This document shows positions 3,343-60,179 of a stretch of 64,000 nucleotides of DNA, in pieces. A model generated the notes under the pieces. It was not told the origin of the DNA. It worked only from the letters and a program-made list of their open reading frames with translations, and made no database searches. The position numbers and the translations under genes are program-made. The stretch is from NCBI RefSeq assembly GCF_006345805.1, contig NC_043009.1:37634001-37698000 (forward strand). Reading direction: 5' to 3'. Source of the stretch: Octopus sinensis (Eukaryota). Position 1 is the first letter of the stretch. Every line of letters begins with the position of its first letter.

Positions 3343-3665
3343 CATCATCATCATCATCGTCATCAAGCATCTGTTTTCCATGCTGGCATAAATAGGGTGG
3401 TTTGACAAGAGCTGGCTGATCAGAGTTGTATGAGGCTCCAGTTGTCTGTTTTGGCATGGTTTTTATGGCTGGATGCCCTTTCTAATGGCAACCCGGAGTG
3501 TACTGGGTGCTTTTTATGTGACACCAGCATGGGAGCTTTTTACATGGTGCCAGCATGAGTGCTTTTTACATGGCGCTAGCATGGGTGCTTTTTATGTGAC
3601 ACCAGCATGAGTGCTTTTTGTGTGGAACCAGTATGGGTGCTTTTTACATAGCACCAGCACCCATG
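3343..3665 (-). mobile_element. Degenerate RTE 3' tail with a ~26-bp tandem array (about 6 units) of the UTR core motif
   Basis: (CAT)n start. Repeated GGGTGCTTTTTATGTGACACCAGCAT at about 3504-3660. Confidence 0.8.
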
Positions 3666-14399: not shown

Positions 14400-15112
14400 G
14401 GAAATAATCCGTGGTAGAGGGAGACCCAGGAAGACATGGGATGAGGTGGGGAAGCTTAACCTTCGAACGTTGGGCTTCACAGAGGCAATGACGGAAGACC
14501 AAGACTTCTGGAGATATGCTGTGACTGAGAAAACCTGGCAAGTAAAGTGAGATCACAACTGTAACCTACACCAGTGTTGCATAACCAGCCCACTTAAAAA
14601 AACGTACCTTTGGATCGTCGGGCGACATGCCGTGCTTGAGGAGACCTATTGAGTCAAGCACATCAAAATCAAATCAAACCACAATCAAATGGAAATTGTA
14701 CTTCTGGCTGATGCCAGTGCCGCCCGACTGGCTCCTTGTGCCAGTGGAACATAAGCACCATCTGAATGCAGTTAATGCCAGCCCCTTCACCCCGACTGGT
14801 TCCTATGCCAATGCCATGTAAAAAGCACCATCCGAATGTGGCTGGTCCCAGCGCCCCGGTGGCACGTAAAACACACCACCTGAACGCAGTCGATGCCCCC
14901 CCCCACATACACACGTCTGGCTCCTGTGTCAGTGGGACGTAAAAAGCACCCACTACACTATCAGAGTGCTTGGCATTAGGAAGGGCATCCAGCAGTAAAA
15001 ACTTTGCCAGATCAGATTGGAGCCTGGTGCGGCCTCCTGGCTTGCCAGACCCCAGTCAAGCTGTCAAACCCATGCCAGCATGGGAAATGGACGTTAAACG
15101 ATGATGATGACA
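14400..15112 (+). mobile_element. 5'-truncated RTE LINE (end of ORF2 plus 3' UTR with 4 core units)
   Basis: GRGRPRKTWDEV motif, RTE UTR and (GAT)n tail. Confidence 0.88.
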
Positions 15113-19319: not shown

Positions 19320-19433
19320 TTTACCCAGTCTCCGCTGGAGTGTACAGAGTTCACTGACCTGGAAGTTGGAGCCCTGTTGGGTGCTGATGACGAAGATGAT
19401 GAAGATGAAGAGAGTCGCTCTTGGAGAAGATAA
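19320..19433 (+). CDS. RBM26: RBM26/27 terminal coding exon (FTQSPLE...ADDEDDEDEESRSWRR*)
   Basis: atttttcag|TTT acceptor. The acidic tract and terminal ESRSWRR-stop are the RBM26/27 C-terminal signature. TAA at 19431-19433. Confidence 0.96.
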   Translation, partial: FTQSPLECTEFTDLEVGALLGADDEDDEDEESRSWRR

Positions 19434-19437
19434 TAAA
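19432..19437 (+). promoter_or_regulatory. AATAAA overlapping the stop codon (TAA TAA AC)
   Basis: Seen in sequence. Use as a poly(A) signal is unproven. Confidence 0.3.
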
Positions 19438-21633
19438 CAAACATATGGATGATGGAATTTTCATTTCTCCCCCATCCCCTACACCACCACCTCTACCACT
19501 ATTGCCTATATCTATGGCACCAGTTTTTTTTTCATGTACAGTTGTAATATTCTTAAAAAAAAGAAGAGAACAATATATATAAGAAAATTCTTATTCTTTC
19601 TCGCTTTCATAACAAAAACTAAATTCTATTTTTTCCCCTTCCCCTTTTAATTTGCTCGTTGTTCCCATTAAGGCAGGCTAATGTGTCATTTGATTCCAAC
19701 TGAACAAACACGAAAAGTTTGTTGATAATTTTTTTTCTCCTTTTAGTTTGAGGAAATTTTTTTTCTTTATTTGTTTATTTCTGGAACAGTAAATCTGGGT
19801 TGATTTACTCTTGCCTTCATTTTTTTTTAAAACCCTTCTGAGCTGACCACTTCATGCAAGACAATAATGAGTGTATAATACAAAAAAAATATATATATAT
19901 ATATACATATTTGTATATGTATACACATATATACACCCACTGAACTAGTCAGAAATGCTGTTATTGATTGAAGTAGATAGCAGCTTTTTGTAAATAGATT
20001 TTATGACACACATACACATATCTTACCTTCGTTTTATTTGCCCTCTCCCTCTCAGCCCCCTTCAGTATTGTATTTTCCACCCTCTTCTAAAACCAAACTG
20101 AAATGACTGCTGTGACCCTTTAATTTGTTTTTTATTTTTATTTATTTATTCACTTTTTTTTTTTTTTTTGCAAAGTGGGTTGGTGGGTCTCTGTGTAATT
20201 TTGTTGGTCAGTCAAGAAAATAATCAACATGTATGCACACACACACACACTTAAACATTGGGCTTTAATAATAATGTTTAAACATCACAGAAATGTATAA
20301 AAAAAAAACCTGAATTCAGAAAATATAGTTTGACCATCAAAATAATTTCCTCTGGTTTAGTATAGATTGAGCAAGATTCTTTGGTGACATTGTATGTGTA
20401 TGAATGTATGTGTACACACACACATATATATATATATATATAATGCAAGGATGTGATAGTATTCATTGTGAATGATATAATTTACTGAAATATTTATTTA
20501 TGCAAGCAAAAGATTTACATGTAATCCATTTGTCCCCATAGCAGCCACCTTTCATCTCGAATTAACATCTTGTTTATAGTATATCCTGCGTTTGTGTTCA
20601 AATCTGTTCAAGGGCACTCTATGAAACTAATGTAATGCATAGCTATATTGACATAAGAAGACTATTGTTGGTATTTCTCTTCTCACATACCCATATCTGC
20701 AGCTCATTCACCTTTCATCATCATCAACATCATCATCATCACCTAGTTGTTGTTATCAGACTGTGATGAATGGCAGAATGTCTTGGTGTCATTTCTAGTG
20801 ACTATCTTGTGCCTTATTTCCTGTATACATCCGATACATAAATCTCTTTCTCAGATACACATACGCACTCAGATATTTAGATAATGTATACATTTATATA
20901 ATGTTCTCATATAATATGTAGTTAAACTGTATCAGTGTACAGTAATATATATATATATACACACACATGTGCATACATGTATATATGTATACTATATACA
21001 AACGTATAACTTGTATGTATATGTGTACATACACTTGTATATTGTACTCATGCATACATGTATGTGTGTATATCTCACTTCATCCCACTTAGTTATTTTA
21101 TCAACCAACCAACCCAGCCTGAATTATACCACTTGTTGTGTATGAGTTCAACTTCTGCGTTTCATCATATTTTTTTCTTTAGTTAAGTAGCTAGCTTGAG
21201 CAGTTTAAGTTCAAATTCATGGTGAAAGTGTTTCTTTTCCATGTATTTAAAATATTCCGTTATGTTACATTCACTTAATTTCGGTGGGATATTTAAGTTT
21301 CTGTCAGTTTTTAGCTTGTGCCAGTGGTTATAAATGACATGGCCCTTTATAGCTGACCCCGTCTCATGAGTACATAACTTCATTTTAAGTAACTATTTTA
21401 AAAAGGATTTAGGCAAAAGTTATTTCAGATATATATGTGGACAATGGACTTTAAATGATGTTAATATATAATATAGGTTTGATGATAAAAACAAGAAAGA
21501 AATGAAAACTTGAACATATATATATAATTTCAGCAAAACAATTAAGATTCACATGAATTCAAATGAATATGGTACTTAACTTAGATGCACCAGAATTCTT
21601 TATGGTATTAACCATAAAAATATGTGGGGTGAT

Positions 21634-21980
21634 TATAACCAAGAAAAAAGTAACAAGAATGGATCAGTAATTTAGCACAATAGTTTCATACTAAGAACAT
21701 TTTATTTAAAGCTGCAAATATTACAGCAAATATAATGTCAAGTATTCATCAGCTAAATCACATATATGTTTTCCACACATCCCAGAGAGTGTAAATATCC
21801 TTATGAAGTATTCAGATATTTACACTCTCTAGGATGTGTGGAACACATATATGTGATTTAGCTGATAAATACTTGACATTATATTTGCTGTAATATTTGC
21901 AGCTTTAAATAAAGTGTTCTTAGTATGAAACTATTGTGCTAAATTACTGATCCATTCTTGTTACTTTTTTCTTGGTTATA
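21634..21980. repeat. Long inverted repeat: 166-bp arms (21634-21799 and 21815-21980), 15-nt loop, 4 mismatches
   Basis: Base-by-base reverse-complement comparison gives 162/166 identity. Confidence 0.98.
21908..21913 (+). promoter_or_regulatory. AATAAA candidate poly(A) signal inside the right arm of the hairpin
   Basis: By eye, this is the first canonical AATAAA after the one at the stop codon. Confidence 0.35.
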
Positions 21981-24471
21981 TATTTATATATATATATATC
22001 TTTTTATTAATCAGAAGTTACAAAGTAACTCAAGGGTTGAGGGTTTCATGCACTGGCATGTTTGATAAGTGTTAGTTCATGAGACTCTCAGCCCTTGTGT
22101 TAGTCTCTAATTTCTGTCAGTTAATTGATATAATTTTATGATCTATTTTGTTGCAAAGAAAATTTTTTAAATGTACCATTATTTTTCATAACTATTAATT
22201 ATCTACAATGCTAGGCACCATACTTACTGTTTGCGAATTTCTTTGGGCAGATCTACTTTCATTTTCATTTTTTCTCTTTGGTCTTTTAATCGACAGTCTT
22301 CTTCCTAAAAGTCAAAATTTCATGGCAAACATTGTCTTACACTGGCTTCTCTGGTAGCATTCAGTCTCTTTGTTTTATATTTCTAACCATAGTTATAATA
22401 TTTATCTGCCATCGTTCATCCTAACAACAACATGGGGTTCTGTCGTGAATAAAAACAAACTAAATATCGAACATATTTGTATTAGTAATAAGCAAGGTAA
22501 TGAATTGGCAGGCCAGGTTGTGTTTAGTTATGTCCCTATATAATCTTTATATCCTATTGAAGTTAATTTTGCCATTCAACCTTGAAAGCGTAGTGTGTGT
22601 GCTCTAATATAAGCACCACCAATCAAATACTGGAGTTGGATTGGTCAACTACTGCCCCATCACACACAAAAATATTCTGGTGTGAAATTATACTTATTTA
22701 TCTTAGAAAAAAATATTATTGTATTAATAATAGTACCTTGTATACTGTGCTGCTATTCCTAATAATGTTGTTATTTTACAATTCATATTAGGGCAGTGGT
22801 TAGTAGAAACTGTATGAAGCCAGTTAAAATGCTTTTCTGTATTTAGTAACATCCCTTTATGATTAGTGTTCAAAATTCAGGATTAATAAAATAAGTACCA
22901 ATCAAGTAGGGGCTCAGTAAGAGTGACTCTATCCTTTGATCTTGTTATTAAAGAAATTATTATCATTATTTAAATGAATGTTTTAGGAAAGTCATAGCAT
23001 TTACAAAAGAGCTGTCTAAATACTTAGTTTCTTAATTAAGTCTTCATTACTTTTTTTTGTTATTTTTTATGTCACTGTCTTAGGTTTGTGCATTGATGAT
23101 TTTATAATTCCTAGCCACCTAATTTAGAAATGGGATCATCCAGTATAATCTTTTATTTTGTTTTAGTATAATCATTCATCTCCCTAATCTTGAGCTTTTC
23201 TCTGTTAAATGTCCGCATATACTTCATTCACCATTCCAAACATATACAGACCCTTGAAATTGTAAATTTTTTTAAAGCGCTCCATCTATGTATTTTATTA
23301 ATTTTAATTTCAATTTTGCTATCACTGTTTAGAATAGGAGTAAAGTGAGGGATCCAGATCAGTCTCTGCTTGCAATTGCTGGGTCTATAGAGAGTAATAC
23401 TGAAGAGCCAGTGGGAGTGGGTGGGGCTTATAATCTTAATACTGCAGTCTCTCTCTCTCTCTTTCTGGTTATCACACTGCATTTGAGCCCTGATGTTGTC
23501 AGTAGATAATATCATCTGCAGTGGGAAGACTGTGAACATGCAGTGTGCAGTGCTGCTGGAGAGAAAGATAGTGACTTGCTGTAGATTGGTATCTCTTGCT
23601 GAATGAAAGAGAATAGATTGGGTGGGGATCTTTTGTGTCTCCTTCATAGCACAAACACCAAAGATAAACTTTGGCCCAATGCGGTCTTGTCATTCTTGGA
23701 CAATCAGTAGCCCAGTCCAATTTTGGTTATCTCTTACTGTTGATATATATATACATGTGTGTGTGTGTAGATATGGTGACATGACTGCTTGAAGTGCTGC
23801 ATGAATTGGAAGTGGGAGAGAGAATAATTTTAATTAGCGTAAGTTCTAAGCAAGTTATTTTCTTGGCTCATCAACCCACGTCTTAATTTTTTTTTTTTAT
23901 TATTTTTTTTTGTGTGTGTATGTGTGGAGTTGGGGTTGGTATCTCTGTTTTACTTTTTCTCTCTTCTTTTTCTCTCCCAATTCACAAATTCTTACATCCT
24001 ATCTTGATTTGACCCGGTTGAAGAAAAAAAACAAAACAAGAGATATAACGATATTGACGTTTTAAAATATGAAAGATACCTTCATTTGAAAATAAATGGA
24101 ACACAGGTGAATAAAAAGAAAAAAAAAATTATTTAAATTCCACATTCTGCTGGGATTTGTTCCATACTTATTCTTCGAAGTTTTTTTTTTCCTTCTTTCT
24201 ACCCCCTCTATTATATTTTAGTGAAACATATAACAACAGCAACGGTAGCAACTACAAAAGGCGGCAAAAGAAAATATCAGTTTTAATAAAACTGCAAGAA
24301 GTTTGGTTTTGTTACCTAACTCTTTTCTTTTAAATTAAATTTTTTTTTTTAACAAAAATTTTGTTTTCTCCATGTGAAGGAAGTAGTTGATTAAATATTC
24401 TGGACTTCACACTGTTTTTAACTATTATTATTATTATTTTTATTTTTTTTTTTATTATTGTTACCATTATA

Positions 24472-29526: not shown

Positions 29527-29880
29527 TATCATCATCATCATCGTTTAACGTCTGTTTTCCGCGCTAGCATGGGTTGGACAGTTCAACCGGGGTCTGGGAA
29601 GCCAGGGGCTGCACCAGGCTCCAGTCTGATCTGGCAGTGTTTCTACAGCTGGATGCCCTTCCTAACGCCAACCACTCCGCGAGTGTAGTGGGTGCTTTTT
29701 ATGTGCCACCGGTACAGGTGCCAGGGGAGTCTGGCATCGACCACGATCAGTTGGTGCTTTTAACGTGCCACCGGCACGGAAGCCAGCCAAGGCGGCACTG
29801 GATTCGGCCACGTTCGGATGGTGCTTTTTATGTGCCACCGGCACAGAAGCCAGTCGAGGTGGCGCTGGCAACGATGAGAC
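29527..29880 (-). mobile_element. RTE 3'-end fragment (3 core units)
   Basis: Reverse complement of the 1649-1945 type. Confidence 0.9.
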
Positions 29881-30719
29881 AGCGCCAGTGGTTTCAAGGT
29901 AGGAAGAATTCACAGAGTTCGGTTTAATGAAGTGACCACACGGCTAAGCCCACACGCACGACATACTTATGTGGGTATATGTGTATAAGTACAAAGGTAA
30001 GAACTAATCTGGGAGACTGAAATTATAAAAATTTTGGTACTTCAATTGTTAAGCTGTTGCTATGTTTAGAGTTAGACCTTTGGGAATTTTATCGTAAAGC
30101 TGTTTACATTTTATTGATCCAGTTATGACCTTCCCATTATTTTGTATGTGCAAGGCTACATTGTCCAGTGTGTTCTTTGTTTTCTCTTTTTCAAGATGGT
30201 TATGAAGTATTTGAGGAAAATTTAGCTATTGTTTCTAGTAGATTAAGTTACTGTAGAGTTTCTTCTTGGTTTGAATATGATTTTATTTTCTAACCATGTG
30301 TACTGTTTTTTCTGAAATGAGATGATCAGACATAACTGTTTGGATGTTGATGATTTGACACAACTGACTAAACATCCCACCTGTTTTGGCACTGGAGGAA
30401 AATGCACCCATGTGCAGAAATATACATGGATAGATATTACAGATATCTAAAAGGCATAAATAGTTGCTCATACACATAAACAAAGCGAGTGGGGGAATTA
30501 AAATGCCTGATGTCAAATGAGTCGGTATTGAATCAGCAACACCAAAACAGCTGTGTCAAAACGTCTCATAGCCTGTTCGCTCAGAAACTTTTCTGTTCAG
30601 TTAAACATGCTACAATGTATAATTTCTCTTTCTTTTTCAGCCATTCTGAAGATTCTGCCACAACAGTGAAGTAAAGTGCAATTCAAAAAGGAAGGAAATT
30701 AATTGGGTTCTAGGATTTT

Positions 30720-32107: not shown

Positions 32108-32410
32108 GTACATATATCTTCATTTAATATATGTTTTCTAAGCTAGACACAACATGCACACATGTAGGTGTGCAATGCTAAGTGTCTCCTTGTTTTGGTG
32201 TCATGTGATAATTGTTAATGAGTGTCACTGTCATACAAGCAGTGCCATTCATTTCCAGTATTCTGCAGCAACATTTCTGGTAATGGGGAAATTTACCTTT
32301 CTAACCCAGTAAGGTTTAGCAAAGAAAAGGGAATCTGGCTGTAGAAAATCTGCTTCAGTAAACTCCATCTAACACATGCAATATTAAATGATGTTAAGAT
32401 TATTTCTATA

Positions 32411-32772
32411 GGCGTAGGAGTGGCTGTGTGGTAAGTAGCTTGCTTACGATCCACATGGTTCCGGGTTCAGTCCCACTGCGTGGCACCTTGGGCGACTGTC
32501 TTCTACTATAGTCTCAGGCCAACCAATGCCTTGTGAGTAAATTTGGTAGATGGAAACTGAAAGAAGCCCGTCGTATATGTATGTTTGTCCCCCCAACATC
32601 GCTTGACAACTGATGCTGGTGTGTTTACGTCCCCGTAACTTAGTGGTTCGGCAAAAGAGACCGATAGAATAAGTACTAGGCTTACAAAGAATAAGTCCTG
32701 GGGTCGATTTGCTTGACTAAAGGTGGTGCTCCAGCATGGCCACAGTCAAATGACTGAAACAAGTAAAAGAGA
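32411..32772 (+). mobile_element. Family-A SINE, young full-length copy
   Basis: Near-consensus sequence. Confidence 0.92.
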
Positions 32773-33014: not shown

Positions 33015-33373
33015 TCTTTACTTGTTTCAGTCATTTGACTGCGGCCATGCTGGAGCACCGCCTTTAGTCGAGCAACTCGACCCTGGGACTTATTCTTTGT
33101 AAGCCCAGTACTTATTCTATCGGTCTCTTTTGCCGAACCACTAAGTGACGGGGACATAAACACACCAGCATCGGTTGTCAAGTAATGCTAGGGGGACAAA
33201 CATATATATACGATGGGTTTCTTTCAGTTTCCATCTACCAAATCCACTCACAAGGCTTTGGTCGGCCCTAGGCTATAGTAGAAGACACTTTCCCAAGGTG
33301 CCACGCAGTGGGACTGAACCCATGACCATGTGGTTGGTAAGCAAGCTATTTACCACACAGCCACTCCTGCGCC
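33015..33373 (-). mobile_element. Family-A SINE, young full-length copy (convergent with 32411-32772)
   Basis: Reverse complement of the family-A consensus. Confidence 0.92.
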
Positions 33374-33781
33374 TATGTGTGTGTGTGTCTGTTTATAATT
33401 TGTGCTCTACAAAAGCCACTTGCTATGAGCAGTGTTGTCACATCCTTCATTTCATGCCTTAAAACAAGATAAATTATCTAGCTGTATAACACAAATCCTG
33501 AGTATATAATACACAATGTACACACCCTCACTATAATACATAATATATGTATCCTAATTGTGTAATTCATGATATATAGATATCTTGGTTGTATATTACA
33601 CCAATATACATTATATGTTATACAATGGTTGTGTGGTTAAGAAGCTCACTGCAACCATGAGGTTTTGGGTTCAGACCTTGGACAGGTGTCTTCTATAGTC
33701 CTGAGCTGACCAATGCTTTGTGAGTGAATTTGGTTAATAGAAACGGTATGGAATTAGTAGACAGAAACTGAAAGAAGCCTA

Positions 33782-36324: not shown

Positions 36325-37753
36325 GTGCAGCAATGTCAAAGGAAGGCTAACTAGGTTTTTATTCAGCCTGATAGCTATTTGCACTATCTATGAATGCATT
36401 CTCTGTGTCCTATATTGGAAGTGACAAATCTTGCATGACCGTGTTAAAGAAGTTTATTTATTTGTCGGTTTGTTAATTTAAAACATATCCTTATTTGAAT
36501 ATAGGACACAGGAAAATAGTTTTTGTCTGTGGCAGATGCTCAGGAGCAATAAACACTGAAAATGTGCAGAGACCAACTTCTACCACGTTCCAGGGAGAAA
36601 AACTAGAAGTAGTTGATAGCTTCCGCTACCTAGGTGACCAAGTCAGTAGCGGGGGTGGGTGTGCTGAAAGTGTAACTGCTAGAGTAAGAATAGCCTGGGC
36701 AAAGTTTAGAGAGCTCTTACCCCTGCTGGTGACAAAAGGCCTCTCGCTCAGAGTAAAAGGCAGACTGTATGATGCATGTGTACGTACAGCCATGCTACAT
36801 GGTAGTGAAACATGGGCTGTGACTGCTAAGGATATGCGTAAGCTCGCAAGAAATGAAGCCAGTATGCTCCGATGAATGTGTAATGTCAGTGTTCATAATC
36901 GACAGAGTGTAAGTACCTTGAGAGAAAAGTTGGACCCAAGAAGCATCAGTTGTGGTGTGCAAGAGAGACGTTTGCGCTGGTATGGTCATGTGACGAGAAT
37001 GGCTGAAGATAGTTGTGTGCAAAAGTGCCACACCCTAGCAGTTGAGGGAACCTGTGGAAGAGGTAGACCCAGGAAAACCTGGGACGAGGTGGTGAAGCAC
37101 GACCTTCGAACTTTAGGTCTCACTAAGGAAATGACTAGAGACCGAGACCTATGGAAGTATGCTGTGCATGAGAAGACCCAGCAAGACTAGTGAGACCATA
37201 ACCCGTGGCCTCTACCTGGTATGTAGCCAGTCGACTTATACATACCTTTCCTTCTTGGGACACAAAACTCCACTTGTGAAGACCCGTTGAGGCAAGTGAA
37301 AATCAAAATCAAATCAGATATCAGAAAGCAGAACCAAAATCGAAGTCGATCAACATCAATGGAAATTGCAGCTGTGATACCAGTGCCGGTGACAAGTAAG
37401 CAAACCATCTGATCGTGGCTGTTGCCAGCGCCGCCCTGACTGGCCTCCGTGCCAGTGGCACGTAAAAAGCACCATCCGTTTGTGGCCGTTGCCAGCCTTG
37501 CCTGGCCCCCGTGCCAGTGGCACATAAAAAGCACCATCCGTCCGTGGCCGTTTGCCAGCTCCGTCTGGCACATGTGCAGGTGGCACGTAAAAAGCACCCA
37601 CTACACTCACGGAGTGGTTAGCGTTAGGAAGGGCATCCAGCCGTAGAAACACTGCCAGATCAGACGGCCTGATGCAGCCTTCTGGCTTCACAGACCCCAG
37701 TTGAACCGTCCAACCCATGCTAGCTTGGAAAGCGGACACTAAATGATGATGAT
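36322..37753 (+). mobile_element. 5'-truncated RTE LINE (ORF2 C-terminus plus 3' UTR), interrupted by a 150-bp templated insertion
   Basis: ORFs 36495-36875 and 36876-37190 (FRYLGD, GSETW, RRLRWYGH, GRGRPRKTW). One in-frame TGA. (GAT)n tail. Confidence 0.95.
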
Positions 37754-38599: not shown

Positions 38600-39839
38600 T
38601 GTCTTACAGTGCTGAATTCAAATTCTTTCATGGGAAACTTTATTACACCTTCAACTCTTGACATCAATCTGCTTGAAACCACCTTTGGTTCAATGACGCT
38701 GTTGGTACATGGAGTGCATGAGGCGGTTCACAAAAGTCATTGGTACCCCTGCCCACACCCTGAGGAAAGCTGCCTCCAGTTCCACATGAGTTTTCAGCCT
38801 TGGGACCACCTGGTTTAGCCATCTCTGGATTTTATTCCACAGGTGTTCAAATGGGTTCAAATCCAGGCTGAGAGCCAGCCACGGCAAAGCTCTGATGTTG
38901 TACTGATGCAGGAAGTCCATGATGACTCTGTCCATGTGGGAGAGAGCATTGTCCTGCTGGAGCATGTAGCTATGGTGACACATGAAGAAGGGCACAATGT
39001 GAGGTCTTAGGATCTGGTCAATGTAGCACTGTGCTGTGATGCCATTCCCTCTGCCTGCACCAACATTTTGGAATACATAGGGGCCAATTTTCTGATTCAG
39101 GCCTATGGTACGCCCAAACCATGATGCTTTGGCCACCCCACGTGTCTCTCCTTGATACATGTGTCTGTAGCATTCACCCCTCCTGTGTCACATCCCCACT
39201 CTGCCATCCAAGGTGGAAACACAGTACTGGCTCTCATCAGAGAAGACTATCGACCTCCATTGTGGATGCCACTAATGTCGGTGTTGTGGGCGATGAGGAC
39301 ATGCCCTTGTGCAGGACAACAGCAACGCAGGTTTTTGTTGGTCAGTAGATGTCATACCGTGTTATCGCTGTCCAGTGCCATTGGTCTCGCAACCAATTGT
39401 ATTGCTATTGCAGGTGATAGATGGTGCTGACATGGACATTATAATCTTTCGCAACAACCAGGGCACACTGTCCTGCTTGCAATCGACTGATTGCTTGTTC
39501 TCTCTGCACTGCTGACAATTGGGTCGTACATGATGCGTCCAAATTACGAATGTCAGGAATGCAGTTCAAGTTGATTTTTATACCCATGACCTCTATGTGA
39601 TGCATGTGCATTTTGGTTTCCATAACAATTGTTTTCAACTGTCACCCATGGCATTCAAAGCAGCTGCATTTTGGCATCTTGTTTCAGGGAAGGTTGAAAG
39701 TTTACCTTCAATTTGGGTCTCAGCCATAAACCAGCATGTCTTGGAATATTTACGCTTACATCCCTGAAATAAATTTTCAGAATTTACCCATAGAAAAACA
39801 ACATATGAAAAAATCGTGTTCCTTTTGTGGTTCAGTGTA
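38600..39839 (-). mobile_element. Decayed Tc1 (DD34E) element
   Basis: QQDN..(34 aa)..DLNPFEHLW catalytic segment, an N-terminal HTH remnant (39405-39638) and TIR-like CACTGAACCACAAAAGG plus TA at 39821-39839. The other TIR was not recognised. Confidence 0.85.
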
Positions 39840-48010: not shown

Positions 48011-48396
48011 GTATATCTTTAACATCCTGTCATTAATATCATTATACACATTTCAATAATCAAGAAACAAGTAACAAACACCATATATATACATATACAG
48101 AGAGAGAGAGATGAACTGGTAATATTAGATCCTAAATGCATTGCATTGTATGACTGAAGTTTTAAAAGGAACTTGAACTACATTGTAAGAAGGTATGAAA
48201 TTTGCAGGAATAAAAAAACAAAATTTTTTAAATCACCCACGTACACACACTTCCTTTTGTTAAATGTTAGGATGAACAGGCACCTTTCATTTAAATCTAC
48301 TAATCTCAATGATCCATAGAATGGAACTTAACCTTGCTTTTCATACTGTTACATGATACATGGCAAACCTGAGCTAGGCTAGGATGTAAACATATA

Positions 48397-50069: not shown

Positions 50070-50372
50070 TGAAGGTTCATGGCTCAGTAGTTAGAGTGTT
50101 GGGCTCACAATCATGAAGTAGTGAGTTTGATTCCTGGACCAGGCTGTATGTCATGTTCTTGAACAAGACAATTTTCACATTGCTCCAATTCACTCAGTTG
50201 TAGAAATGAAAGTTGTATTGACCTTTGTATTTCCCTTCGATAATATCAGTAGCATGGAGAGGGGAGGCATGGGTGACTGCTGGTGTTCCATAAACAAGCT
50301 TGCCTGGACTTGTGTCCAGAAGAACTTTCTAGGTGCAATCCTATGGTCATTCATGACCGAAGGGGGTCTTAT
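50070..50372 (+). mobile_element. Family-D tRNA-derived SINE
   Basis: Head TGGCTCAGTAGTTAGAG...GAGTTTGATTCC. The tail is shared with the minus-strand copy at 55145-55335. Confidence 0.7.
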
Positions 50373-50431
50373 ATATGTATAAATATATATACATGTATAT
50401 ATGTGTATATATATATTTACACATATATAAT

Positions 50432-50467
<36 letters not shown>

Positions 50468-50526
50468 CATATATATATATATATTATATATATATATATA
50501 TAATTACATATATATATATATATAAT

Positions 50527-50570
<44 letters not shown>

Positions 50571-50582
50571 CATATATATACA
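50370..50582. repeat. Compound (TA)n / TATAATTACA microsatellite
   Basis: Read directly. One of many (TA)n, (CA)n and (CT)n tracts in the window. Confidence 0.9.
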
Positions 50583-57759: not shown

Positions 57760-59150
57760 GAGTAAAAGTGCTGAGAAGGTGTGCATTTACATCTTCCGGT
57801 ACCAAGTGGAAAAATGTTTTTAGGCAGTTTAATGTCAGGTATTCAATCACTGTGTGAAACAAAATGGAAGAACTGTGTAATCCATAATACATGAAAACTT
57901 GAAAAATGCCTTTACGAGTATTCTAGGCTCTACTGAAGATACACTTTGTCAAACAGAGAATCTATTGGCAAAGTTGAATAATTTTACATTCGTGTTTTTT
58001 CATCAATTGTTTTCCTAAGATACTTTCTCAGGCTGGAAAAGTCTTTGATATTCTACAGTGTAAGCTACTCGGCATAAAGCATGGTCAGAGTAAACTAAAT
58101 GACCTCATTCATTGTGTTGAAGGTTATTGTAAGGACAAACATTATGTAAACATTCTGCATAATACAGCTGCTGTCACTCAACAGGCAGATGAGTCTGATC
58201 CTCCTTCTAGAAAAAGAGTCAGAGGTGCATAAATTACAAAACTGCCTATTTTGAAATCTCTCTATATATAAAGCTGAAGTTGTCTGTGTATGGCAGGTTT
58301 GGTAGCCTTCAACTAACACTATCTCCTTCGAGACCCTGCGGCACAATTTGACCAAAATTGAGAGTATGATAGAAGGCTTGTTCTTCCTTCCAAAGAAGAA
58401 AAAATTCAAATCGGACCATGTTAACACCAAAAATTATTTACATCAAAAAGGTATTTTTTTTCTATGAAAATCCCTATTTTTTATGATTTTTTGACTGCCG
58501 TGTCGCCATTTTTCAGTGTCTTTCAACCAGAAAAATGTTCACTTAAAGAGAATAACAAGCTACATAATGCAAAATTTTTACTTTTCAAAAATTCCTATTC
58601 TAAAGGGTCAAACTCGAGCAACGCCGGGCAATACTGCTAGTAATTGATAACATTCTAATGTCCTTATGAGAGAGATTTTCTGGCATTCAGGAATATGCAT
58701 TTTTTTAATTACTAGATATGAATAAGTTTAAAGAGTTTGCTAACTCATTTCCCATGCAACATATGGACTCTCTAGAAAACAAGTATCCATGTATTATTGA
58801 CTGTAAGAGCTTAGTGAATGAGCTAAAATATATATATATTGACAGTAATTTCAAAAAGTGCAAGTCAACCAACTCCTTTTTAGAATTACTGTATAAATTG
58901 GAATAGACTTCCGCTATGCCGGAATCCATTAAACTAATTAGGTTAGTGCTGACCATCCCCTTAACATCAGCTGCTAATGAGAGAAGCTTCTCAACGTTGG
59001 ATAGAATCTGCTCATATCTGAAAAGCACAATGGCCCAAAAATCACTGTCTTCACTGGCTTGTCTTTCCATTGAGAAAAGCATTTTGAAGGACTTGGACAA
59101 CAAGGAGTTGCATGGCAAAATATTACACTAGTTCACCATCAAACCATGAT
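57760..59150 (+). mobile_element. Decayed hAT transposase (core remnant plus C-terminal dimerisation domain)
   Basis: LTIPLTSAANERSFSTL...LKSTMAQKSLSSLACLSIEK (58916-59131). AYFEIIDNILMSL*ERFS is restored once the Helitron is removed. Confidence 0.85.
58257..58640 (+). mobile_element. Non-autonomous Helitron-like element (384 bp) nested in the hAT ORF
   Basis: A|TC start, CTCGAGCAACGCCGGGCAATACTGCTAG|T end, no TSD. Confidence 0.88.
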
Positions 59151-59243
59151 GACTGGAGTTCATGTATAATTGGAGTAATTTTTATATTAAAACTATATTT
59201 CCGCATGGAGGGTATTTATAAGTCATTTAAAAACACACTTTAT

Positions 59244-59510
59244 AAGGTGTTTATAAGCCATTTAAAAATTCACTTCAATATTTAAATTGTCAAAATATCT
59301 TCGTCGCTTTGAGACTATGATCTGTTCACTGACAAAATTCCGTGCTGCAGCATGGGATTTTGTCAGTGAACAGGTTGTGTTGCAGCACAGAATTTTGTCA
59401 GTGAACAGGTCGCAGTCTCAAAGCGACGAAAATATTTTGACAAATTAAATTTAAATGTTGAAGTGAATCTAACGGTTTTTGTGTGTTTTTAAATGGCTTA
59501 TAAACACCTT
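59244..59510. repeat. Fold-back (palindromic) MITE-like element with an internal duplication
   Basis: Arms AAGGTGTTTATAAGCCATTTAAAAA...GACAAAATTCCGTGCTGCA and its reverse complement. Confidence 0.8.
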
Positions 59511-60179
59511 CCACACTGCACTTGTTTTTGTTTCAGCACATGATCTCAGATCAGGTCACTTGCTGTGCAAGTACATCTCCGTAATAACTATATTTCTGTC
59601 TTGTTAGATTATCAGCACACATATAAATCTGGGTGTGCATTACGTCTCTTACCTTCTTTTATACATGTATCTTATGCAAAATCTGTGATAAGCCCAAGTG
59701 ACATTGATGACCTGGAGTCACCTCTGATGTATATATGTGTATATATATGTACACACACATATAAATAAAAAGAGAGAGATATATAAATAAAAACAAAGGA
59801 ACACTGAACACATGTTATGGAAGTTAAACATTTATATTAATCTCAGTTGATTAAAAAATTTCCCCTTGCAATATTACATATCAGAAGGTTTCATCAAGGT
59901 TCTTCCCCTCTACCCAACCTATATACACATACACACACATTCAAATCGACCTTGGTGGAATTTTGAACTCAGAACATAAGGGGTCAGAATAAATGTCACT
60001 GTGTATCTTTGTCTGATGTGCTAAGGATTCTGCTAGTTCGTTCCCTTATATGTACATATTAAATAAATACAGTAATATAAAAATTTATGCACATATATGT
60101 TAAACAGTTGAGATAAACACACAGACCTACAAATATATACACACACAGATGTTTAAATGCACAAGCATAAGACTCATTG

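Follow-up and report, generated by a model that had tools for sequence, protein, structure and literature searches.

A near-perfect palindrome of 347 bp, by far the most perfect duplex of the window (the whole 64-kb stretch of octopus DNA analysed here), was found at positions 21634-21980, probably inside a long 3'UTR of an RBM26/27-type gene. With moderate confidence, it is interpreted as a young, apparently low-copy, AT-rich fold-back palindrome that would be hyper-edited by default if transcribed, and as a neutral by-product. It is made up of the following parts:

21634-21799, left arm, 166 nt, 28% G+C, complementary to 21815-21980 at 162 of 166 positions
21800-21814, spacer CTTATGAAGTATTCA, 15 nt, between the arms
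21815-21980, right arm, 166 nt, pairing with the left arm

Renewed comparison of the two arms reproduced the coordinates and the 162/166 complementarity reported in the initial annotation, together with the four mismatches listed there (T21700/G21914, C21747/A21867, T21770/C21844, and C21783/A21831). These differences correspond to an arm divergence of 2.4% (three transitions and one transversion), the lowest among the repeat pairs of the 64-kb window. Such low divergence points to a recent event, although the same appearance could result from selection or from gene conversion between the arms. The spacer itself holds a 4-bp mini-stem (TGAA/TTCA), the remainder being a 3-nt apex (GTA) and a 4-nt bulge (CTTA), and therefore the palindrome effectively continues to the apex, with the bulge as an interruption. 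At the opposite extremity, pairing ends sharply at 21633/21981, where T faces T, and the arm termini are complementary to their very ends (TATAACCAAG...CTTGGTTATA), thus forming terminal inverted repeats. The element is small, AT-rich (28% G+C over the 347 bp), and non-coding, the longest open frame comprising 44 codons and running into the flank.

The palindrome folds far more strongly than expected by chance on both strands. The minimum free energy (MFE) of the + strand RNA was -262.3 kcal/mol, compared with -68.9 +/- 4.4 kcal/mol in shuffled sequences (z = -44), while that of the - strand RNA was -263.8 kcal/mol (z = -40). The 166-bp stem provides an intramolecular duplex well over 100 bp in length.

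No second copy of the arms was detected within the 64-kb window or in an unrelated O. vulgaris chromosome locus of 20.9 kb (L003), i.e., in approximately 85 kb of octopus DNA in all, a result that excludes merely an extreme copy number, roughly 10^5 or more. As expected, exact-pattern scans for arm segments gave no match in the JGI metagenome collection (two segments) or in GTDB genomes (one segment). Neither the SINEs nor the LINEs of the window or of the O. vulgaris locus match the arms, which are separated by just 15 nt; hence, the arms do not represent two inverted copies of a dispersed retroelement. The earlier observation that they are unlike any SINE, LINE, or MITE elsewhere in the window was borne out, no resemblance to the window's families being found. 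Searches against Rfam 15, including miRNA precursors, remained below gathering scores, the best hit being MIR4371 with 82.2 bits (threshold 110) and the others not exceeding 40 bits; the models that scored on the palindrome were just generic TE-type or perfect-hairpin miRNA models.

The dinucleotide TA, or TATA, occurs at both ends of the palindrome, which lies directly beside a (TA)n tract; neither flank recurs within the window. Under an insertion model, the empty site would read as follows:

Palindrome flanks, putative empty site: ...GGGGTGATTA joined to TATTTATATA..., with one TA

As target-site duplications, TA, AT, and TATA alone fit, and all three are themselves palindromic and so uninformative, whereas no non-palindromic duplication of 3-10 bp fits at the palindrome. 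The terminal TTA...AAAAGTAA may resemble the Hsmar1/MADE1 inverted repeat, and no similarity was observed to the termini of any autonomous element in the window. Two candidates were discarded: an empty-site paralogue proposed through a 22-nt match at 48056-48077, attributable to low-complexity chance, and an apparent hairpin at 50370-50578, which is a TA microsatellite.

Two origins are envisaged. A TA-flanked non-autonomous fold-back DNA transposon (palindromic MITE) may have inserted beside the (TA)n tract, or an inverted duplication may have been generated by replication snap-back (template switch). Because the target-site duplication is indistinguishable and no extra copies occur in approximately 85 kb, snap-back is nearly as likely as transposition; judging from the sequence, we would place the palindromic MITE slightly above even chance and snap-back slightly below it.

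The window contains other fold-back structures. A second, unrelated self-palindrome occupies 59206-59513, with arms of about 150 nt carrying indels, a loop of approximately 25 nt, and an RNA MFE of -178 kcal/mol; it is older than the palindrome at 21634-21980 and has no other copies in the window or in the O. vulgaris locus. A SINE-like family of approximately 375 bp, with at least seven copies in the window and present also in the O. vulgaris locus, forms an inverted repeat pair at 32408-32767 and 33017-33376, with 360-nt arms that are 91% complementary and lie 250 nt apart. Together with several further inverted repeat pairs, these examples show that fold-backs are common in this stretch.

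Several further features were recorded among the repeats of the window. The palindrome at 59206-59513 adjoins a 137-codon ORF on the - strand (58705-59118) that has no Pfam match, and additional inverted pairs of the SINE-like family occur at 33-36 kb, with arms of up to 236 nt, constituting potential long dsRNA if transcribed. A LINE ORF at 36495-37190 shares 73-91% identity with O. bimaculoides and O. vulgaris proteins, and the O. vulgaris locus harbours the SINE-like and LINE families of the window at 70-89%; both results mark the window as octopod. A G+C-rich repeat unit with the ORF motif GAFYVPPAQ recurs at 1594-1950, 3434-3607, 14669-14953, 29574-29927, and 37356-37739; it apparently forms the tail of the LINE family located at 36.5-37.7 kb and 44.9-46.3 kb, and its folds are strongly strand-asymmetric, e.g., at 14876-14965 (- strand). 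A fragment of a Tc1/mariner-type DDE transposase at 38690-39160 (- strand) scored 21.8 bits on Pfam DDE_3, below the threshold; no terminal repeats like the palindrome ends were seen there, and the fragment would show only that this TA-targeting superfamily occurs, or occurred, in the genome. Finally, a full-length match to the Rfam vault RNA model at 29868-29955 (- strand), with 35.4 bits against a gathering score of 34, occurs once in the window, immediately next to a dispersed repeat (29530-29875), and may represent either a true vault RNA gene or a marginal match.

The position of the palindrome relative to the upstream gene depends on the following features:

19431-19433, + strand, TAA stop of the RBM26/27-type gene, preceded by the C-terminus ...EESRSWRR, i.e., ...DDEDDEDEESRSWRR
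19432-19437, + strand, AATAAA overlapping the stop codon (TAATAAA)
19438-21633, + strand, putative long 3'UTR, 2,196 nt without AATAAA or ATTAAA, where 4.7 were expected
21908-21913, + strand, AATAAA in the right arm, the first canonical poly(A) hexamer after the stop-overlapping one, pairing with UUUAUU 21701-21706 in RNA
22031-22097, + strand, pre-miRNA-like hairpin, 67 nt, 50 nt downstream of the palindrome, with a basal stem out to about 22006-22125
22448-22453, + strand, AATAAA, the first downstream of the palindrome, candidate distal poly(A) signal, from which + strand hexamer density is back to expectation

The 3' half of the RBM26/27-type gene lies on the + strand, its exons being visible in the translations of the window. 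A cephalopod RBM26/27 transcript (P0124/L002; Logan, SRR27666078 contig, 2,118 nt) with a complete ORF of 401 aa and 76% amino-acid identity confirmed the exon chain and the C-terminus, and nucleotide similarity stopped exactly at the TAA. Since coding similarity ends at 19431-19433, the palindromic hairpin begins 2,201 nt past the stop codon, in agreement with the distance of approximately 2.2 kb initially estimated. The 3'UTR of this transcript (at least 809 nt) presented no nucleotide similarity to the window past the stop codon, which suggests that the RBM26/27 3'UTR evolves quickly between cephalopod lineages. The transcript stems from a more distant cephalopod; protein searches with the RBM26/27 exons of the window yielded no Octopus orthologue, the matches consisting of the transcript itself, a fish RBM27, and an unrelated animal contig (L001). 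Exact look-ups of the ORFs at 21183-21383, 21766-21861, 23228-23647, 38690-39160, and 2174-2590 returned no matching record.

Canonical poly(A) hexamers are depleted in the region separating the gene from the palindrome. In 19438-21633, AATAAA and ATTAAA are absent from the + strand, while the - strand holds 11, compared with 8.5 expected. Dinucleotide shuffles gave a probability of 0.004 for zero + strand hexamers between the stop codon and the second arm, a post hoc statistic to be weighed against the fact that 4.9% of all 2.2-kb windows taken across the sequence likewise lack + strand hexamers; non-canonical poly(A) variants do occur in the desert region. The desert spans 2.5 kb, or 2.66 kb of non-palindrome sequence once the palindrome is excised, in which case it reaches 22448 with no + strand hexamers against 5.3 expected and 13 on the - strand. 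Past 22448, the + strand count is normal (15 versus 13.1 expected in 3.55 kb). The desert has the appearance of a long 3'UTR from which premature poly(A) signals have been eliminated and, with the AATAAA at the stop codon, suggests two 3'UTR isoforms of the RBM26/27-type gene, an ultra-short one and another of about 3 kb. Against a long 3'UTR stand that stop-overlapping AATAAA and the median octopus 3'UTR length of 350-380 nt (PMC9699675).

The 67-nt hairpin that follows the palindrome is the third-best 90-nt fold of the window and is single-copy within it. In a 91-nt context, it reaches -47.3 kcal/mol (z = -7.8) as + strand RNA versus -26.9 kcal/mol as - strand RNA, a strand difference among the largest for the strong folds of the window. 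This difference arises because the 28 upper-stem pairs include 6 G:U but no A:C pairs, within a stem of approximately 33 bp including the basal part. Rfam scores were below gathering thresholds, with 31 bits for mir-12 (55 required) and 33 bits for MIR1513 (95 required). The hairpin sequence strings and 22 candidate seed-match 8-mers were not among the O. vulgaris miRNA seeds in the accessible part of the lists in PMC9699675, where four of the 22 8-mers figure as "non-seed kmer" controls. The poly(A) desert and this hairpin may jointly mark the true 3' end of the RBM26/27-type gene.

Transcription of the palindrome on the + strand is plausible because of the hexamer desert and the adjoining + strand-specific hairpin, and we consider it somewhat more likely than not that some isoform includes it. 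The proposal in the initial annotation that the palindrome belongs to a 3'UTR appears plausible on the same grounds, namely the zero hexamers against 4.7 expected and the strand-specific hairpin downstream.

The arm mismatches had been described as ADAR-optimal A:C pairs, the adenosine at 21831 sitting in a TAG triplet. This triplet was confirmed, and the second mismatched adenosine, at 21867, was found in TAA. The 119 arm adenosines, however, include 35% with a 5' U and five in UAG, and the contexts of the mismatched ones (UAG and UAA) are not significant. Moreover, the + strand carries one G:U and two A:C pairs, the - strand two G:U and one A:C. Wherever a transition appears as G:U on one strand, the opposite strand has A:C, so that the A:C pairs amount to ordinary C/T differences. 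The mismatch pattern is strand-neutral, as neutral decay predicts, without sign of ADAR-tailored design, and the designation as ADAR-optimal is thus not supported. The 67-nt hairpin, with six G:U and no A:C pairs, provides the internal contrast: the palindrome displays no such strand-specific keeping of RNA pairing. A perfect duplex of 166 bp is edited promiscuously by ADAR whatever its mismatches, and therefore a tailored mismatch would contribute nothing. Octopus A-to-I editing is found mostly in intron and 3'UTR hairpins (PMC9699675), so hyper-editing would be the default expectation for the palindrome if transcribed.

Taken as a neutral fold-back, the palindrome would have the following consequences. 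A long 3'UTR isoform of the RBM26/27-type gene, or read-through from it, would carry the palindrome on the + strand, and the arms would snap into a duplex of approximately 166 bp once the right arm is transcribed, burying AAUAAA 21908 against UUUAUU 21701. The duplex would then undergo promiscuous ADAR hyper-editing, like many octopus intron and 3'UTR hairpins, with possible incidental effects such as reduced expression of the long isoform or masking of the AAUAAA in the 3' arm. The arm mismatches would be ordinary post-duplication substitutions following a neutral structural mutation. A recent inverted duplication or TA-flanked fold-back had been mentioned as the neutral alternative in the initial annotation; given the strand-neutral mismatches, the sharp ends, and the local fold-backs, it is now the better-supported reading. 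If correct, it adds a further example of fold-back repeats seeding long dsRNA in cephalopod 3'UTRs, and the palindrome could be useful as a positive-control ADAR substrate.

The initial annotation proposed instead a possible dedicated element. On this reading, selection would keep the hairpin in the RBM26/27 3'UTR as a binding platform for ADAR, Staufen, or further dsRNA-binding proteins, through which the stability, nuclear retention, or localisation of the mRNA of a nuclear RNA-decay (PAXT) adaptor would be controlled. This explanation draws on the probable inclusion of the palindrome in a + strand transcript (hexamer desert and adjacent + strand-specific hairpin), on its perfection, unequalled in the window, on its position outside the abundant repeat families, and on the extensive editing of 3'UTR hairpins in coleoids (PMC9699675). 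The sequence bears no sign of selection, however: wobbles and mismatches show no strand bias, the contexts of the mismatched adenosines are statistically ordinary, the 2.4% arm divergence fits a recent origin, and another palindrome and inverted pairs lie within the same 64 kb. A perfect 166-bp duplex would, furthermore, be editable without any "optimal" mismatch. We therefore regard a selected dsRNA as unlikely. Were the palindrome conserved and site-selectively edited, it would represent a gene-specific dsRNA switch of a rare, non-repeat type, located in an mRNA that encodes an RNA-decay factor.

A more elaborate version of selection, which we judge improbable, would treat the palindrome and the 67-nt hairpin as one selected module at the distal end of an approximately 3-kb RBM26/27 3'UTR, setting 3'-end choice and mRNA stability via ADAR binding or editing, AAUAAA occlusion, and/or Drosha cleavage of the small hairpin. 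If true, dsRNA sensing and PAXT-type decay would be coupled in an autoregulatory loop, in an animal that edits heavily.

It is highly improbable that the palindrome is a small-RNA hairpin locus, either an hpRNA of the Drosophila type that yields endo-siRNAs or a miRNA-like gene derived from a MITE, perhaps transcribed together with the 67-nt hairpin. The hpRNA architecture is indeed that of a long, perfect inverted repeat closed by a short loop, the TE-derived MIR4371 model gave a sub-threshold score (82 bits, with 110 required), and a pre-miRNA-like hairpin lies 50 nt away; yet no Rfam family reached its gathering score, and 347 nt far exceeds the length of a pre-miRNA. When 32 species were surveyed, O. 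bimaculoides among them, neither a dedicated molluscan siRNA pathway nor convincing Dicer products of long dsRNA came to light (PMC12479628), which also disfavours the endo-siRNA production suggested in the initial annotation. Least probable of all is an assembly artefact, in which a fold-back or chimeric long read was taken into the assembly and the palindrome is absent from the genome, for although long-read library preparation is known to produce perfect palindromes as artefacts, four arm differences and an asymmetric spacer are unexpected from a same-molecule fold-back after polishing, and the element is short, internal, and bounded on both sides by unique flanks without Ns.

Four known systems offer terms of comparison for the neutral fold-back. 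The Drosophila hpRNA loci hp-CG4068 and hp-CG18854 produce Dcr-2/AGO2-dependent endo-siRNAs against a homologous target gene. Unlike them, the palindrome belongs to a lineage, the molluscs, that appears to lack this siRNA pathway (PMC12479628). The likeness lies in the long inverted-repeat arms, the short loop, and the non-coding, here putatively transcribed, DNA.

Palindromic AT-rich repeats, namely the human PATRR8, 11, 17, and 22, are defined by cruciform-mediated instability and size polymorphism. The octopus palindrome is similarly near-perfect and AT-rich, with a length of a few hundred bp, a spacer of few nt, nearly identical arms, and no recognisable transposon, and with no second copy in approximately 85 kb of octopus DNA. 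To our knowledge, PATRRs have not been described in molluscs.

Palindromic MITEs are fold-back non-autonomous DNA transposons, exemplified by the Hsmar1-derived human MADE1 and by the palindromic TA-flanked elements of C. elegans. The palindrome shares with them a modest size (347 bp), AT-richness, lack of coding capacity, arms that span nearly the whole element, and a short spacer, as well as TA at both ends beside a TA-rich target, a location in the 3' region of a gene, and RNA scores on TE-derived miRNA models. It departs from them in having no second copy in the window or in the 20.9-kb O. vulgaris locus, no similarity to autonomous-element ends in the window, and a target-site duplication inseparable from the palindrome itself.

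Inverted repeats hyper-edited by ADAR in 3'UTRs include human inverted Alu pairs and the mouse CTN-RNA, and ADAR-hyper-edited 3'UTR hairpins were reportedly described in C. elegans by Morse, Aruscavage and Bass. Whereas inverted Alu-type substrates consist of two retroelement copies hundreds of nt apart, an arrangement that exists elsewhere in the window (e.g., 32408/33017), the element studied here is one self-contained palindrome with a 15-nt loop. As in those substrates, its duplex exceeds 100 bp and probably lies in a 3'UTR, so that promiscuous A-to-I editing would be expected, with possible nuclear retention or reduced expression. In this respect, the palindrome belongs to a known kind, that of fold-back repeats which seed dsRNA in 3'UTRs.
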